This document shows, piece after piece, positions 2,598 through 62,915 of a stretch of 64,000 bases of DNA. Location: positions 186,001-250,000 of the IMG/VR virus record IMGVR_UViG_3300028840_002431; one strand, given 5' to 3'. The notes beneath the pieces are model-generated. The model was not told the DNA's origin and made no database searches. It was given only the letters and a program-made list of their open reading frames with translations. A program made the position numbers and the translations under genes. Position 1 is the first letter of the stretch. The number at the start of each line of letters is the position of its first letter.

Positions 2598-2699
2598 ATG
2601 GCTCTCGTAAGGTATTGCCCAAACTGCCACCGGCAAGAGATGATCATGGTCAAAGACGGCTGGTCTTGTAGGTGTTGCGGCCACTTCGAGGCGGACTAA
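2598..2699 (+). CDS. small zinc-ribbon protein (33 aa)
   Basis: SD AAGGAG; CPNC...CRCCG. Confidence 0.55.
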   Translation: MALVRYCPNCHRQEMIMVKDGWSCRCCGHFEAD

Positions 2700-3379
2700 C
2701 CGCGCTGGTATAACGCTTGCAGCCTGTCCTGGTCGTCCGACTTTTGTGGGACCCCAAACCGTCCATCACCTATTCGAGGGCCGTGTACCCAACGGGGGTC
2801 TGTGGTTTTGACCAACTTGGCCTGATCGTCTTTAACATACCTGTCGATGAATTTTCGCATCTTTGGAGAAAGCCGGACACCATATGCGTACCCGAACTTG
2901 CTACCGCCGCGCCACGGCAGCACCAACACAAAGTAGGGCTTCGTCTTGGCAGGTAAGATGTAAGATTGATCAGATTTCTCGGTAACGAATCCAGAGCCTT
3001 TGGCGGCGTTTACCTTACGAGCCAACTCGTGGAATCGCTTACCGTGTTCGAGGGGCTTCAATCCCATGCGAACCATGGTCGCCGTCTGCTCATCGTAGTC
3101 GAGCACGGCTTCCGCGTGATGCACCATCTCGTGGGCCACCACACGCTCCAGGGTCTCCTCGTCTTCGAAAATGCCCGCCTGGAGTTCCATCAGGTTTTGT
3201 TTCCCAAGCTTCCAAGTCAAACGCCCCAACCACTTAGCGCCCAGGTTGTCTCTGACGACGATCTTAGGTGTGCTGTCAACACCCAGTATGCGGGCATACT
3301 TGTCGGCCAATTTGTGGGCCAGGGACACCTTCTTGGAATCCACTCGACCCCAGATTCGTCGATCATAGGTGTAGCCCAT
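2696..3379 (-). CDS. SprT-like zinc metalloprotease
   Basis: VAHEMVHH (HExxH) and downstream HGKRF typical of SprT. Confidence 0.75.
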   Translation of the reverse strand: MGYTYDRRIWGRVDSKKVSLAHKLADKYARILGVDSTPKIVVRDNLGAKWLGRLTWKLGKQNLMELQAGIFEDEETLERVVAHEMVHHAEAVLDYDEQTATMVRMGLKPLEHGKRFHELARKVNAAKGSGFVTEKSDQSYILPAKTKPYFVLVLPWRGGSKFGYAYGVRLSPKMRKFIDRYVKDDQAKLVKTTDPRWVHGPRIGDGRFGVPQKSDDQDRLQALYQRG

Positions 3380-3441
3380 ACCCCACACCGGGTATAAAAT
3401 CGTCCTCACACTGTGATCCTTTGATAAATCGCGAGAGTGAC

Positions 3442-4131
3442 ATGAAATATAGCTACGACCGACGAAAGACGGCTTCTCCCAGTTCCATTCTAAGGGTCAT
3501 TGTCAAGAATGCCTTGGATGGCCGTAAGCTCAGCAAGCTCATAGAAGCGTACCGAGAGGCTCTGGAAGAAGACTTTGAAGAAGAGCACGGGCACGGCTAT
3601 GAGGGTTACGGCACCGCCGAGGCGCAACGGTGGTACGAGAAAGTTCTCGACTATGTGTTCGACGCCCGTAAGAAAGAGAAGGAACTCCAAGACGCCTACG
3701 TGAGAGCCTTTCTCAGAACCAAACGGGGAGCGCCTAAGAGTCAGGCCAAAGAGAATTTCGACGAGGTCGAAGACTTCCCTTACTCTGACAAGATTCCGGT
3801 ACCCGCACTGGTTATCGCGGTTATCGGAGAGGCCCTTGGAGAACGCGACGCTCAGGCGGCCATGGACCTCGAAGCTCATGCGCGACAACGAATGGAAGGT
3901 GTGAGGGATCTCGTGGTGAAGTCACGAGGAGGCCCGGACTATGCCTCCGGAGGGCAGTACGGACCTTGGGGGCTTGCTGTTGTGAACGGCAAGCATGTCA
4001 GGTGGACCTACGCGGACGACGGCGGCGGCAACTGGGTGTTTGATGTTGTCGTTTCATCCCCCGCGCACGGCAAGCTTGATTCTAGAGAAGAGCAGCAACT
4101 AGAGAAGGCGGTCGAAAAAGCGCTCCGTTAA
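3442..4131 (+). CDS. hypothetical protein
   Basis: starts MKYSYDRRKTAS. Confidence 0.75.
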   Translation: MKYSYDRRKTASPSSILRVIVKNALDGRKLSKLIEAYREALEEDFEEEHGHGYEGYGTAEAQRWYEKVLDYVFDARKKEKELQDAYVRAFLRTKRGAPKSQAKENFDEVEDFPYSDKIPVPALVIAVIGEALGERDAQAAMDLEAHARQRMEGVRDLVVKSRGGPDYASGGQYGPWGLAVVNGKHVRWTYADDGGGNWVFDVVVSSPAHGKLDSREEQQLEKAVEKALR

Positions 4132-4544
4132 TCGATCGTAACCTCGAACGAGGATTCGACCATCCAGCGTCTACCGCAGTTCCTACAATGGTATTCGCGC
4201 CGACAGCGTTCTTTCGTAGGGTAAGAGACTCGACTCCATACCTCCTCGTCTGAACACTTGCCACACCTGTCCATACTCTTCTCCGCGCCTAAGGGCACAT
4301 ACTCCCAATCATCGGGAATGTCCCCAGGCAAGTGACCGGGCCGGAAGCCGCCCAGCGCCGCTTCAAGTCTACGGGTCAGACTAAGAGTGACACCGTGCAT
4401 ACTGTTGAGCGAGTCCGTCCGGCTGGCCGCGATTTGGAGTAAGGTCTTCAAGTCGGATTTGGAAACGACAACTTCAATCCCCTCAACCGAGTCCAACAAC
4501 TCTTGAAGCCGGTGCTCTATCTCCGTAATCCCAAGACTACTCAT
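4128..4544 (-). CDS. hypothetical protein with C-terminal zinc ribbon
   Basis: CGKC...CRNCG; SD GAGG before ATG 4544. Confidence 0.65.
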   Translation of the reverse strand: MSSLGITEIEHRLQELLDSVEGIEVVVSKSDLKTLLQIAASRTDSLNSMHGVTLSLTRRLEAALGGFRPGHLPGDIPDDWEYVPLGAEKSMDRCGKCSDEEVWSRVSYPTKERCRREYHCRNCGRRWMVESSFEVTID

Positions 4545-4545
4545 A

Positions 4546-61054: not shown

Positions 61055-61081
61055 TTTAGGTTTAACGGATTCCGTGTGTAG
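61055..61081 (+). promoter_or_regulatory. class A promoter-like motif
   Basis: TTTAGG-N17-GTAG-N7-ATG (61089). Confidence 0.65.
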
Positions 61082-61088
61082 TGGAGGT

Positions 61089-61379
61089 ATGGATAATAGT
61101 ACCCCCAAACCGGGCGACGTTATCTACGTCCCCTCAAGCTGGTATGTGTATCGAGGCCGGGACGATTTCCATGGAGGTAAGGCCACCGTCTCCGAAGTCA
61201 AAAAGGAGAGCTACGGCACCTTCGTCTCCATCGAATCCCGGCCGGGCCACGGGTATAACTGGGACATCCTGAAAGACAAACAGGAGAAGCTCGCCACCGA
61301 ATATGGCGATACGTGGGCGCACCCGGACCCGGACTACCACCCCGATGTAAACGACGACAACGCCGATTGGAGGCCGTGA
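61089..61379 (+). CDS. hypothetical protein
   Basis: start reassigned from motif spacing. Confidence 0.7.
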   Translation: MDNSTPKPGDVIYVPSSWYVYRGRDDFHGGKATVSEVKKESYGTFVSIESRPGHGYNWDILKDKQEKLATEYGDTWAHPDPDYHPDVNDDNADWRP

Positions 61380-61771
61380 TGAAATTGAAGTACGTTGGCA
61401 CGCGCACCAAAAAAGGGTGCGAAATAATTGTACGAGAAGAGGACAGCGGCCACGAGTGGCCGCTTCCACCCAGACTGGATCTTTACAACCACAGTCCGAC
61501 AGGCTTCGAGTGGGGCTACCACGGCTCCGGACCGGCCCAGACGGCTCTGGCTATCCTGGCCTCGCACCTCAAGAAAGAGGAACACCGGCCAGCCGTAATG
61601 AGCGCCCTGGGGATGCTCAGCCCTCCCGACGCCGAGACCATGGGCATGGACACCCACGAGTATCTCGCCGTCTGTTACCACCAGCCGTTCAAGGCTCTCG
61701 CCATCGCGGGTCTGGATGAGGACCAATGGGAACTGACAGAGGACGAGATCGCCCGTCTCATCAAGCGTTAA
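61379..61771 (+). CDS. DUF6166-like protein
   Basis: NHSPTGFEWGYHGSGPAQTALAIL. Confidence 0.75.
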   Translation: MKLKYVGTRTKKGCEIIVREEDSGHEWPLPPRLDLYNHSPTGFEWGYHGSGPAQTALAILASHLKKEEHRPAVMSALGMLSPPDAETMGMDTHEYLAVCYHQPFKALAIAGLDEDQWELTEDEIARLIKR

Positions 61772-61808
61772 ATCGTCGGGTGTAATCTTTCGATGCTAAG
61801 TGGTTTAC

Positions 61809-62915
61809 ATGGCATCGGTGAGTCCGTGGACGGTCGTTCGACGAGCATCCTTACGCAAGGCCGACGGCTTCCAACTAGAAGCTAGGTCCAAGGCCCAAAT
61901 CCTGCCCAAAAAGCGTTTCGACGCCTGGAAGGACCGGTTCGACGGCTTGTCGGAAACTGCCGTGAAAGCGGCCGAGACGGTCCCTGACGAGGTAAAGCAT
62001 TTTCTGGCCGACGACGAATTCCGCGAGTACACCCTCAAAGAAGCCGCGAAAGCCCTGAGAAAGCTAACCACAGAGCGAGCCAAGGAGATTGCTGCCGCTG
62101 CCGAGAAGAAGACGGAAGACCTCAAGGAGGCCGCCGCTGCCCTGATGGACGGCGGCGAGATGTCGGACGAGCAAAAAGAAGCTCTCGAATCAGCGGCCAC
62201 CCGCATTGGCGTCAAGGCCGGGTTCGATGCCCTGGAAGCGTCTGTGCTCTCTGGCGCGAAGTCGTTCAACAAGGGGTTGGCCAGTTATGTGGCTTCCAAA
62301 GCATTAGGGCGGGCGTTGAAAAACCCAAAGGGCGTCGAAGGTCCTCCGGAGGAGGCTATCGTTCATCTCGTCGTGGGAGCCATGGGTAAGGAGATCAACG
62401 GTCTTGACGACAAGGGTCTCACGGAGGTGTTAGAAAAGATGAAGCCGGAAAAGACAAAAACCAGTGCCGCTCGCGTTGCCAGCCGGTTCATAGAAGCCTC
62501 CGATATACGGGTCGTGAATGTGGATTTTGTCGGAGACAGACAACCTCGCTGGGACGGCGATCCTGACTTTACCGCCGACGTTACTGTCACCTTCGACGTA
62601 TCCGGCATGGCTCTGGCTCGTTTGTTCGGCAAGCAACGAAGGGTGCTGGAAGGCTTCCTCGAAAAGCTGGACGAAAAAACAGCGATCAAACGGATCGAGG
62701 CTGGCGGCAGTCGCACCAGCCAAATCATGAGAGCCATCGAACCTGAGGTCAACGACCTCATCATTGACTACAACTTGAACGAGTTCGATTCTGACTCCAA
62801 GGTCAGAGACTTCACACCCTCTGAGGACACATCATTCTGGGAAGCCGACATCGATCCCAGAAAGCAGAGAATCCGGTACACCATCGAGGTGGACGCGCAC
62901 GGACTCTGGCAGTAG
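61809..62915 (+). CDS. hypothetical two-part protein
   Basis: helical N-half; internal AARVASRFIEA motif. Confidence 0.75.
   Translation: MASVSPWTVVRRASLRKADGFQLEARSKAQILPKKRFDAWKDRFDGLSETAVKAAETVPDEVKHFLADDEFREYTLKEAAKALRKLTTERAKEIAAAAEKKTEDLKEAAAALMDGGEMSDEQKEALESAATRIGVKAGFDALEASVLSGAKSFNKGLASYVASKALGRALKNPKGVEGPPEEAIVHLVVGAMGKEINGLDDKGLTEVLEKMKPEKTKTSAARVASRFIEASDIRVVNVDFVGDRQPRWDGDPDFTADVTVTFDVSGMALARLFGKQRRVLEGFLEKLDEKTAIKRIEAGGSRTSQIMRAIEPEVNDLIIDYNLNEFDSDSKVRDFTPSEDTSFWEADIDPRKQRIRYTIEVDAHGLWQ

Follow-up and report, generated by a model that had tools for sequence, protein, structure and literature searches.

Portable peptide tags at the termini of megaphage proteins

Short terminal peptides that address unrelated proteins to a common partner are known from several systems. 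E. coli ClpX recognizes three N-terminal and two C-terminal motif classes on unrelated proteins, including ssrA, the MuA C-terminal tag and the N-terminal tags of lambda O and Dps (Flynn et al. 2003, as summarized in PMC5143411); these signals can be moved between proteins and are read by one unfoldase. The XB peptide of the adaptor SspB binds the ClpX zinc-binding domain wherever it sits in the chain, and tethering alone can cause degradation (PMC12373786). In phage T4, the internal proteins IPI-III and Alt share an N-terminal capsid targeting sequence of about 10 residues, a single class with a handful of carriers and a defined L/I-x-E cleavage site (Mullaney & Black 1996, cited in PMC10052503). 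Head proteins of phiKZ- and SPN3US-like giant phages carry N-terminal propeptides cleaved after A-x-E, but these are mostly 111 to 254 residues long and are not a shared short motif (PMC10052503). Encapsulin cargo-loading peptides and the C-terminal capsid-targeting tail of the HK97 protease are short terminal peptides that address unrelated cargo to an HK97-fold shell.

Here, we examined peptides shared by proteins of a 416,539-bp sediment phage (genome G000, IMG/VR record IMGVR_UViG_3300028840_002431), starting from a 64,000-bp window (bases 186001-250000 of the record). Of ∼612 called proteins, ∼48 start with one of four short motifs, R ([RK][VI][AV]xR[YF]xx[AG]), Y (YxYD[RH]R), P (PRKAFEEAL) or W (MDxLRWKT), and about 42 others end in LWDHL. 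These sequences differ from the E. coli ClpX signals, and the system would be virus encoded and mark about 15% of the virus's own proteome. Compared with T4, there are at least five classes, about 90 carriers and C-terminal versions, no defined cleavage site and no clade-wide link to head genes, although some carriers sit in the head module and, as in T4, the tag is followed by a small residue. The giant phages with long propeptides have many head proteins and N-terminal processing, but their protease family and site are known, which is not the case here. As the capsid protein is 84% identical in a relative that lacks the tags, the shell is unlikely to set tag specificity in the way of encapsulin or HK97. 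Literature searches for such tags in huge phages found nothing.

Terminal motifs in the window and across the genome

The first-pass annotation had listed RVAxR[YF]-type and YDRR peptides on unrelated proteins of the window. Six-frame translation recovered every one of these peptides, the N-terminal ones at the 5' ends of real ORFs, so the observation holds and is larger than first described: only 2 of the at least 5 classes had been seen. Carriers in the window are the following (coordinates in the window).

2696-3379 (-), SprT-like zincin gene (Pfam SprT-like, E 3.6e-7) with an N-terminal Y tag (YTYDRR, encoded at 3356-3373)
3442-4131 (+), 229-aa protein with no Pfam family and an N-terminal Y tag (YSYDRR, 3448-3465), transcribed divergently from the SprT-like gene
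7291-8292 (-), 333-aa Cys-rich protein with no Pfam family and a degenerate R tag (NIVGRYLEA, 8245-8277); the start had been placed at 8295 but is most likely at 8292
15014-15460 (+), 148-aa protein with a C-terminal LWDEL tag (15437-15451)
26271-27803 (-), 510-aa protein with an R tag (27750-27788), paralogue of the next gene; the orthologue in the relative G004 starts the same way
27805-28974 (-), 389-aa paralogue with an R tag (28924-28959)
34192-34512 (-), 106-aa protein with a weak P-class tag (PRKTFE, 34489-34506)
45386-45706 (+), 106-aa protein with a C-terminal LWDHL tag (45680-45694)
48447-48881 (+), 144-aa protein with a C-terminal LWDHL tag (48858-48872)
51942-52397 (+), 151-aa protein with a C-terminal LWDHL tag (52368-52382); its 3' end overlaps that of the convergent gene 52381-52842
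52381-52842 (-), 153-aa protein with SYDRR at 52402-52416, seven residues before the stop, near the C terminus and not at it as had been stated
56421-57068 (-), 215-aa protein with an R tag (RVVQRYKTA, 57027-57053)
60139-61023 (-), 294-aa helical protein with an R tag (RVARRFLEA, 60973-60999)
61809-62915 (+), 368-aa deletion-fusion of two genes with an internal R tag (RVASRFIEA, 62472-62498), the former N terminus of the second gene

The paralogues 26271-27803 and 27805-28974 are 35% identical and count as one observation; a third paralogue (genome 398558-400021) carries Y tags followed by a degenerate R tag. In G004 the two halves of 61809-62915 are separate genes, the second of which starts with an R tag and aligns to residues 220-367 here. 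This confirmed the proposal that the internal copy marks a module boundary. For 60139-61023, R9, V10 and R13 are invariant in ten orthologues at 51-66% identity, two of which also carry a P-like tag in front, and in the AlphaFold2 model residues 1-16 are a low-confidence helix outside the core. Two proteins other than 52381-52842 end exactly in YDRR, and the G004 orthologue of one of them ends in YTYDCR.

A lack of enrichment at N termini had been set in advance as grounds for rejecting the first-pass proposal. The motifs were counted genome-wide. [RK][VI][AVLG]xR[YF] occurs 20 times, 14 of them within the first 20 residues (binomial P 2e-10), and YxYD[RHN]R occurs 13 times, 11 of them N-terminal (P 6e-10); overall, enrichment at the termini has P of 1e-7 to 1e-10. 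All-against-all comparison of N-terminal 30-mers gave 127 links, whereas internal 30-mers gave 12-17 and shuffled N termini gave 12. After removal of the first 25 residues, only one paralogue trio remained related by BLASTP. Arg and Ser codons in the tags vary freely (CGN and AGG; AGY and TCC), so the conservation is in the peptide and not in the DNA. PHROGs and Pfam left most carriers and many structural proteins unnamed, but the named carriers include clearly unrelated enzymes: the SprT-like protein, a topoisomerase IB, an AAA ATPase and DUF5662. Codon-adaptation scores of tagged genes were higher than average, a comparison confounded by false ORFs among the untagged genes. No RNA sequencing run was found to contain the region, and expression timing was not examined. 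A megablast of positions 26000-30000 of the window against cultured phages and a first related-locus search with a tagged protein found nothing.

Exchange of tags and gene neighborhoods

We then asked whether the tags behave as portable units. G000 11782-12426 and G004 300022-300651 show an R to Y swap, and the G004 paralogues 301191-301682 and 298380-298922 show an R to W swap. Orthologues of the SprT-like protein carry a Y tag (8), an R tag (6) or, in most more distant homologues, none, in front of the same body. Tags usually end in a small residue (A/G/S), and homology between tag-swapped orthologues starts right after it. No protein carries both an N-terminal tag and the C-terminal tag (0 observed, about 3.3 expected). 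The classes therefore look functionally equivalent, and one tag per protein seems enough.

The genome encodes a ClpX (genome 296503-297768) with zf-C4_ClpX, AAA_2 and ClpB_D2-small domains, which matches solved ClpX chains at E 1e-99 and contains the GYVG pore loop and the IGF ClpP-docking loop. The RKH loop is replaced in all five R-tag-clade sequences aligned but is intact in phage G. R-tagged genes flank clpX in G000 and in the relatives G004, G006 and G009, although those neighbors are mostly not homologous to one another. In 11 further genomes, 20 tagged same-strand neighbors fall into 14 families once the tag is removed, and several carry two R motifs in tandem. Genes beside clpX start with R tags in 14 of 16 genomes. 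Strict R-pattern hits within 3 kb of clpX numbered 19 against 2.4 expected (P about 1e-11, across 12 genomes; the genomes are related, so this value is inflated), compared with 1 against 2.4 expected within 3 kb of the capsid gene.

clpX is present in 14 of the 15 IMG/VR clade genomes searched and in all 7 of those at least 90% complete. Over the 14 clpX-bearing genomes, R-pattern hits totaled 173 against 65 in the control, with only a small excess in some of them (G008, G017 and G019). As clpX is present in most clade genomes checked, its co-occurrence with tags is weak evidence. The relatives LR745208 and Tunturi_5 lack clpX and lack the R, Y and LWDHL tags. The coupling of tags and clpX concerns the R class only: LWDHL is absent from more distant clpX-bearing relatives, and the LWDHL, Y, P and W classes are tied to ClpX only by being interchangeable with R or by occurring in the same genomes.

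Candidate partners of the tags

Our analysis demonstrates that the motifs are short, portable peptide tags selected at the protein level, within about 10 residues of a protein end, on about 90 otherwise unrelated proteins, with four N-terminal classes and one main C-terminal class (the Y motif also occurs at C termini), and that orthologues and paralogues exchange, gain or lose them; what the tags do is inferred. We consider it possible, with a probability of roughly 0.45, that they are recognition or tethering signals for the phage's own ClpX, a reading best supported for the R class. The genomic link of the R tags to clpX is stronger and wider than that to the capsid gene, and recognition or tethering by ClpX is better supported than capsid targeting. 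In this view, the most likely contact is the N-terminal zinc-binding domain, in the way the XB peptide tethers cargo, and tandem R motifs would fit a dimeric receptor. The XB core (LRVVK) resembles the frequent L-R-V-A/V start of the R tag, and there is a resemblance to E. coli N-motif 1; neither was put to a test, and the R tag has an added R-[YF], ends in a small residue and sits on dozens of cargo proteins instead of an adaptor. Tagged proteins would be unfolded or remodeled or, through the retained [ILM]GF loop and a host ClpP, degraded, giving the phage a private, timed turnover system for its own proteins. Binding, unfolding and degradation were not assayed. Since no ClpP gene is present in G000 or in the complete genome G004, degradation would need the host's ClpP. 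Loss of the RKH loop would shift this ClpX away from host ssrA-type tags and towards the basic phage tags. The run of four R-tagged genes directly after the capsid gene is not explained by this model.

If the tags are read by the phage ClpX, this would be a virus that brings its own unfoldase together with a private set of tags, which could amount to a separate, programmable protein-turnover or sorting system inside the host. It would assign a shared property to about 90 proteins per genome, most of them without a Pfam family, supply ready-made portable tags for controlled degradation or cargo loading, and make the role of ClpX in giant phages, so far only guessed at (PMC7824862), directly testable. 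A capsid protein search found 581 IMG/VR contigs encoding relatives, and the large clade genomes examined carry clpX with R-tagged neighbors at the frequencies given above.

The first-pass annotation had proposed that the tags direct cargo, including SprT/zincin proteases, into the head, with a possible prohead-protease site after the small residue, as with T4 internal proteins. The first-pass interpretation as a whole is partly supported: the tags are shared and portable and one carrier is a SprT-like zincin. The capsid-targeting and cleavage part is only weakly supported; nothing shows packaging or cleavage, and we regard capsid targeting as an unlikely, though live, alternative in which the tags would bind the scaffold, protease or core of the prohead. 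In its favor, four consecutive R-tagged genes lie directly downstream of the major capsid gene (genome 12804-13682; phrog_2522, E 2e-49) in a head module with portal, protease and terminase, and one capsid-adjacent carrier is a Lys/Asp-rich protein of the kind seen among internal head proteins. Six consecutive tagged genes (R, E, Y, W, R, W) sit about 4 kb downstream of the G004 capsid gene in the same head module, and one R-tagged orthologue sits beside the terminase gene in four lineages. The scaffold N-domain and protease have diverged far more than the capsid protein from the tag-less LR745208. Phage G particles reportedly hold 104 proteins, including many enzymes and ClpX and ClpP (PMC12484599); whether phage G's own MKRLIKK-tagged proteins are among them was not examined. 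However, capsid adjacency is confined to this phage and its nearest relatives, since G008 and G009, with capsid proteins 88-91% identical, have untagged genes there, and there is no clade-wide excess of R hits near the capsid gene. With no virion proteome for this clade, these observations leave it undecided whether carriers are head proteins. The large number of carriers, which include arrays of about 40 tiny genes that look like early genes, and the occurrence of tags at C termini also argue against this model, which does not explain why unrelated clpX neighbors carry R tags. Pfam S78 and S77 prohead protease models found nothing in the genome, and the head protease (phrog_18299) was found only through PHROGs; its specificity is unknown, no protease site can be defined and removal of the tag was not measured. 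A complex prediction of the scaffold N-domain, head protease and a 40-residue R-tag peptide, which did not include ClpX, gave no verdict, its score not depending on the protease chain, and we do not use it as evidence either way. If capsid targeting is nevertheless right, the tags would list the packaged proteome of an uncultured megaphage clade.

A more speculative and improbable possibility is that interchangeable tags form a virus-encoded address code routing about 15% of the proteome through the phage ClpX, which would act as a loader feeding tagged cargo into the prohead as well as, or instead of, a degradation gate. This would reconcile the capsid-side and clpX-side gene clusters and the reported presence of ClpX and ClpP in phage G particles.

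It is about as doubtful as capsid targeting that the tags dock to some other common partner, such as the phage GroEL-like chaperonin, a clamp, a host factor or a modifying enzyme, the clpX neighborhood being only a hot spot for tagged genes. Terminal, portable and interchangeable tags fit any hub-binding short linear motif, several tags contain an R/K-K-T-A stretch that could be a modification site, and the T4 head-protein N terminus is reported to direct proteins to GroEL (reference list of PMC10052503). The genome encodes a GroEL-like protein (genome 58775-60430) conserved in G004, but the homologue is also present in the tag-less LR745208. No positional or phyletic link to any other candidate was found, whereas the clpX association holds with nonhomologous neighbors. 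Twin-arginine (Tat) signals were ruled out, because YDRR is followed by polar or charged residues and not by a hydrophobic stretch.

An absence of shared function, with the similarity coming from hidden paralogy, a DNA or RNA signal around start codons or chance, is very unlikely: although some small tagged genes lie in tandem arrays and could be fast-evolving paralogues, and one weak upstream 5-mer (TTGTA) is enriched before tagged genes, the terminal enrichment, the clearly unrelated enzymes among the carriers and the tag swaps speak against this reading, hidden paralogy is rejected for most carriers, and a DNA or RNA signal is rejected by the lack of a strong shared upstream motif and by the variation of synonymous codons, the LWDHL codons of G004 following the lower genomic G+C while the peptide stays the same.

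Short peptide motifs at protein termini

The IMG/VR virus record under study (genome G000) is 416,539 bp long, has about 55% G+C, and is estimated to be 87% complete. The window comprises bases 186001-250000 of this record. By capsid protein, its nearest named relatives are the uncultured 485-kb phage LR745208 (84% identity), Tunturiibacter phage Tunturi_5 (48%), and Bacillus phage G (40%). The sequencing runs that contain this DNA are sediment and seawater metagenomes, and none is an RNA run. We called 612 genes with a simple codon-usage caller; these calls are crude and the gene starts approximate, but they are good enough for N-terminal statistics. 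The first-pass annotation had pointed out an R motif and a Y motif shared by unrelated proteins, and this observation held: every peptide that it quoted is present and lies at the start of an ORF, with two exceptions that match what it had described, namely an internal R copy at window positions 62472-62498 and SYDRR at 52402-52416, seven residues before a stop. A six-frame scan showed that in long ORFs the R motif almost always lies 5-8 codons after an ATG.

A lack of enrichment at N-termini had been set in advance as an outcome that would overturn the proposal. In order to evaluate this, we counted matches genome-wide and found that 14 of 20 R matches and 11 of 13 Y matches fall in the first 20 residues, which hold 10% of all residues (P of 2e-10 and 6e-10, respectively). 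Furthermore, an unbiased all-against-all comparison of N-terminal 30-mers gave 127 links, whereas internal segments gave 12-17 and shuffled N-termini gave 12. This comparison revealed two further N-terminal classes, P (PRKAFEEAL-like, 7 of 7 N-terminal) and W (MDxLRWKT, 8 of 9). The same analysis of C-termini revealed a fifth class, LWDHL, located 5-10 residues before the stop of about 42-47 small proteins, most of them encoded on the + strand at genome 126-181 kb. The tag reads [KT][NT]LWDHL followed by 2-9 residues and the stop, and four copies are in the window:

15437-15451, C-terminal tag
45680-45694, C-terminal tag
48858-48872, C-terminal tag
52368-52382, C-terminal tag

In total, about 48 proteins carry an N-terminal tag and about 42 carry the C-terminal tag, and none carries both.

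We then asked whether the signal resides in the DNA or in the peptide. Arg codons in the R tag use CGA, CGC, CGG, CGT, and AGG, and Ser in the Y tag uses AGC, AGT, and TCC. LWDHL varies only at synonymous or conservative positions, so it is a peptide signal and not a promoter or terminator motif; in G004, a relative with 48% G+C, its codons shift to T-ending forms while the peptide is kept. With the first 25 residues removed, the carriers showed no BLASTP similarity, apart from one trio consisting of the two adjacent window genes 26271-27803 and 27805-28974 and genome 398558-400021. Carriers with a Pfam family are unrelated enzymes: a SprT-like zincin (window 2696-3379), a type IB topoisomerase, DUF5662, and an AAA ATPase.

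Conservation, exchange, and distribution of the tags

Ten orthologues of window gene 60139-61023, at 51-66% identity, keep R9, V10, and R13 invariant, and two of them place a P-like tag in front of the R tag. An AlphaFold2 model of this protein puts the tag in a low-confidence N-terminal helix outside the core. For comparison, we used G004, a complete 398-kb relative with terminal repeats, which has the same four N-terminal classes, one more (class E), and 42 LWDHL proteins. Among 301 reciprocal best hits, nine pairs keep an R tag. One pair has R in one genome and Y in the other, with homology starting right after the tag (G000 11782-12426 against G004 300022-300651), and two G004 paralogues carry R or W on the same Lys-rich body. 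A further N-terminal class of about 33 residues (MEKIANPQELAxEL...PSR..LA) sits on about eight G004 proteins, and one W-tagged G000 protein aligns to a G004 orthologue that carries this longer module instead. Homologues of the SprT-like zincin from many contigs carry a Y tag (8), an R tag (6), or, in most of the more distant ones, none, in front of the same conserved domain.

Two gene arrangements differ from those in G004, the first of which explains the internal tag in the window:

window 61809-62915 (+), in-frame deletion-fusion joining the first 231 residues of a gene that is 448 aa long in G004 to the whole following 151-aa gene; the two genes are separate in G004, and the second starts with the tag found internally here
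genome 285850-287094 (-), R-tagged type IB topoisomerase, a single 414-aa gene here; in G004 (142355-145501) its first 93 residues are a separate R-tagged 92-aa gene, and the catalytic part is fused to a 955-aa protein with its own R tag

The tags are lineage specific. The Y-tag start pattern occurs in only five IMG/VR contigs, all large and related. LWDHL is confined to the closest relatives; it was present in G004 and in the relative G002, and was absent from all other relatives checked. LR745208, Tunturi_5, and phage G lack the R, Y, and LWDHL patterns. LR745208 (LR745208.1) has instead its own 28-residue N-terminal module (TLRSKLIRLAHxNPxLRxQLLPLLKEA) on eight proteins, two of which flank its capsid gene. 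At least eleven phage G proteins start with MKRLIKK[AS]-like sequences, including gp13, gp17, and gp38 in the head module, although the low G+C may inflate this cluster. Tunturi_5 has no such start.

Gene neighborhoods of capsid and clpX

To identify what might read the tags, we first examined the head module, which lies at genome 5-32 kb on the minus strand and comprises terminase, portal, a head maturation protease, a Gln/Asp-rich scaffold-like protein, and the capsid protein. Four R-tagged genes directly follow the capsid gene, and one sits beside the terminase gene. In G004, six tagged genes sit about 4 kb downstream of the capsid gene, in the same head module. This arrangement fits the capsid-targeting role proposed by the first-pass annotation and the T4 precedent. 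However, in G008 and G009, two relatives whose capsid proteins are 88-91% identical, the genes after the capsid gene are untagged and only the terminase-side orthologue is kept. Over 12 genomes, strict R hits near the capsid gene were not enriched (1 against 2.4 expected). The proposed capsid-targeting reading is only weakly supported. The major capsid protein itself (genome 12804-13682, -) is 99% identical to that of G004, while most other shared head-module proteins are 55-85% identical. A capsid protein search found 581 IMG/VR contigs encoding relatives, the best 80 of which are at least 90% identical. The capsid gene is unusually conserved, or exchanged, across a very large clade.

We next examined a phage-encoded ClpX (genome 296503-297768, -, outside the window). 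It has the C4 zinc finger, the AAA module, and the small domain, and it aligns to solved ClpX at E 1e-99, with GYVG and IGF in place. In this clade the RKH loop is replaced (TRA, TKA, SRA, and others), whereas phage G keeps RKH. There is no ClpP in G000 or in the complete G004, whereas phage G has ClpP next to ClpX. R-tagged genes flank clpX in G000, and the same holds in contigs whose ClpX is only 51-66% identical, although those neighbors are mostly not homologous to the ones in G000 or to each other. clpX is present in 14 of the 15 large IMG/VR clade genomes searched, including all seven that are at least 90% complete, and is absent from LR745208. R-pattern hits totaled 173 against 65 control hits over the 14 clpX-bearing genomes, and 7 against 7 in LR745208. 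Within 3 kb of clpX, there were 19 hits where 2.4 are expected; the genomes compared are related, so P values overstate independence. In 11 more genomes, genes within a few positions of clpX begin with R or R-like tags, several with two copies in tandem, and the 20 tagged neighbors fall into 14 families once the first 22 residues are removed. Counting all 16 genomes examined, 14 show this, whereas G008 and the relative G015 do not.

Candidate readers of the tags

The comparisons above demonstrate that the motifs are peptide tags borne by carriers that are, apart from one trio, not similar to each other; what reads them is inferred. ClpX is the textbook case of one machine that reads several unrelated short motifs at either end of unrelated proteins (PMC5143411). 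Its zinc-binding domain binds the portable XB tether wherever it sits in the chain, and tethering alone can drive degradation (PMC12373786). Loss of the RKH loop shifts E. coli ClpX away from ssrA and toward N-terminal tag classes, and the XB core resembles the L-R-V-A/V start of many R tags. These two points are leads rather than tests. We therefore rank recognition by ClpX first, with a probability of about 0.45. Only the R class has neighborhood support. A single complex prediction gave no verdict, and neither the zinc-binding domain dimer with each tag class nor the scaffold N-domain alone with the R tag was modeled. No expression or proteomic data exist for this clade. Capsid targeting comes second and appears unlikely on present evidence, and recognition by another hub is considered about as doubtful and comes third. 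The absence of a shared function comes last and is very improbable.

A combined model, in which ClpX would act as a cargo loader for the prohead, would fit the capsid-side cluster, the suggestion of Iyer et al. that phage ClpX aids virion assembly (PMC7824862), and the occurrence of ClpX and ClpP in the phage G particle proteome (PMC12484599). This model is speculative and has a low probability.

Other genes lie next to tagged genes or elsewhere in the genome:

genome 10071-10727 (-), uracil-DNA glycosylase family gene (Pfam UDG, E 2e-16) at the end of the capsid-adjacent run of tagged genes
genome 58775-60430 (-), GroEL-like chaperonin gene, elsewhere in the genome, identified only from its sequence and a G004 homologue
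window 53821-58177 (-), stretch holding a family X DNA polymerase-like gene, a patatin-like phospholipase gene, and an AcrVA2-like gene, named from Pfam hits on the syntenic genes of the relative, next to the R-tagged gene 56421-57068
window 2696-4131, two Y-tagged genes forming a divergent pair separated by 62 bases, which may therefore share one regulatory region
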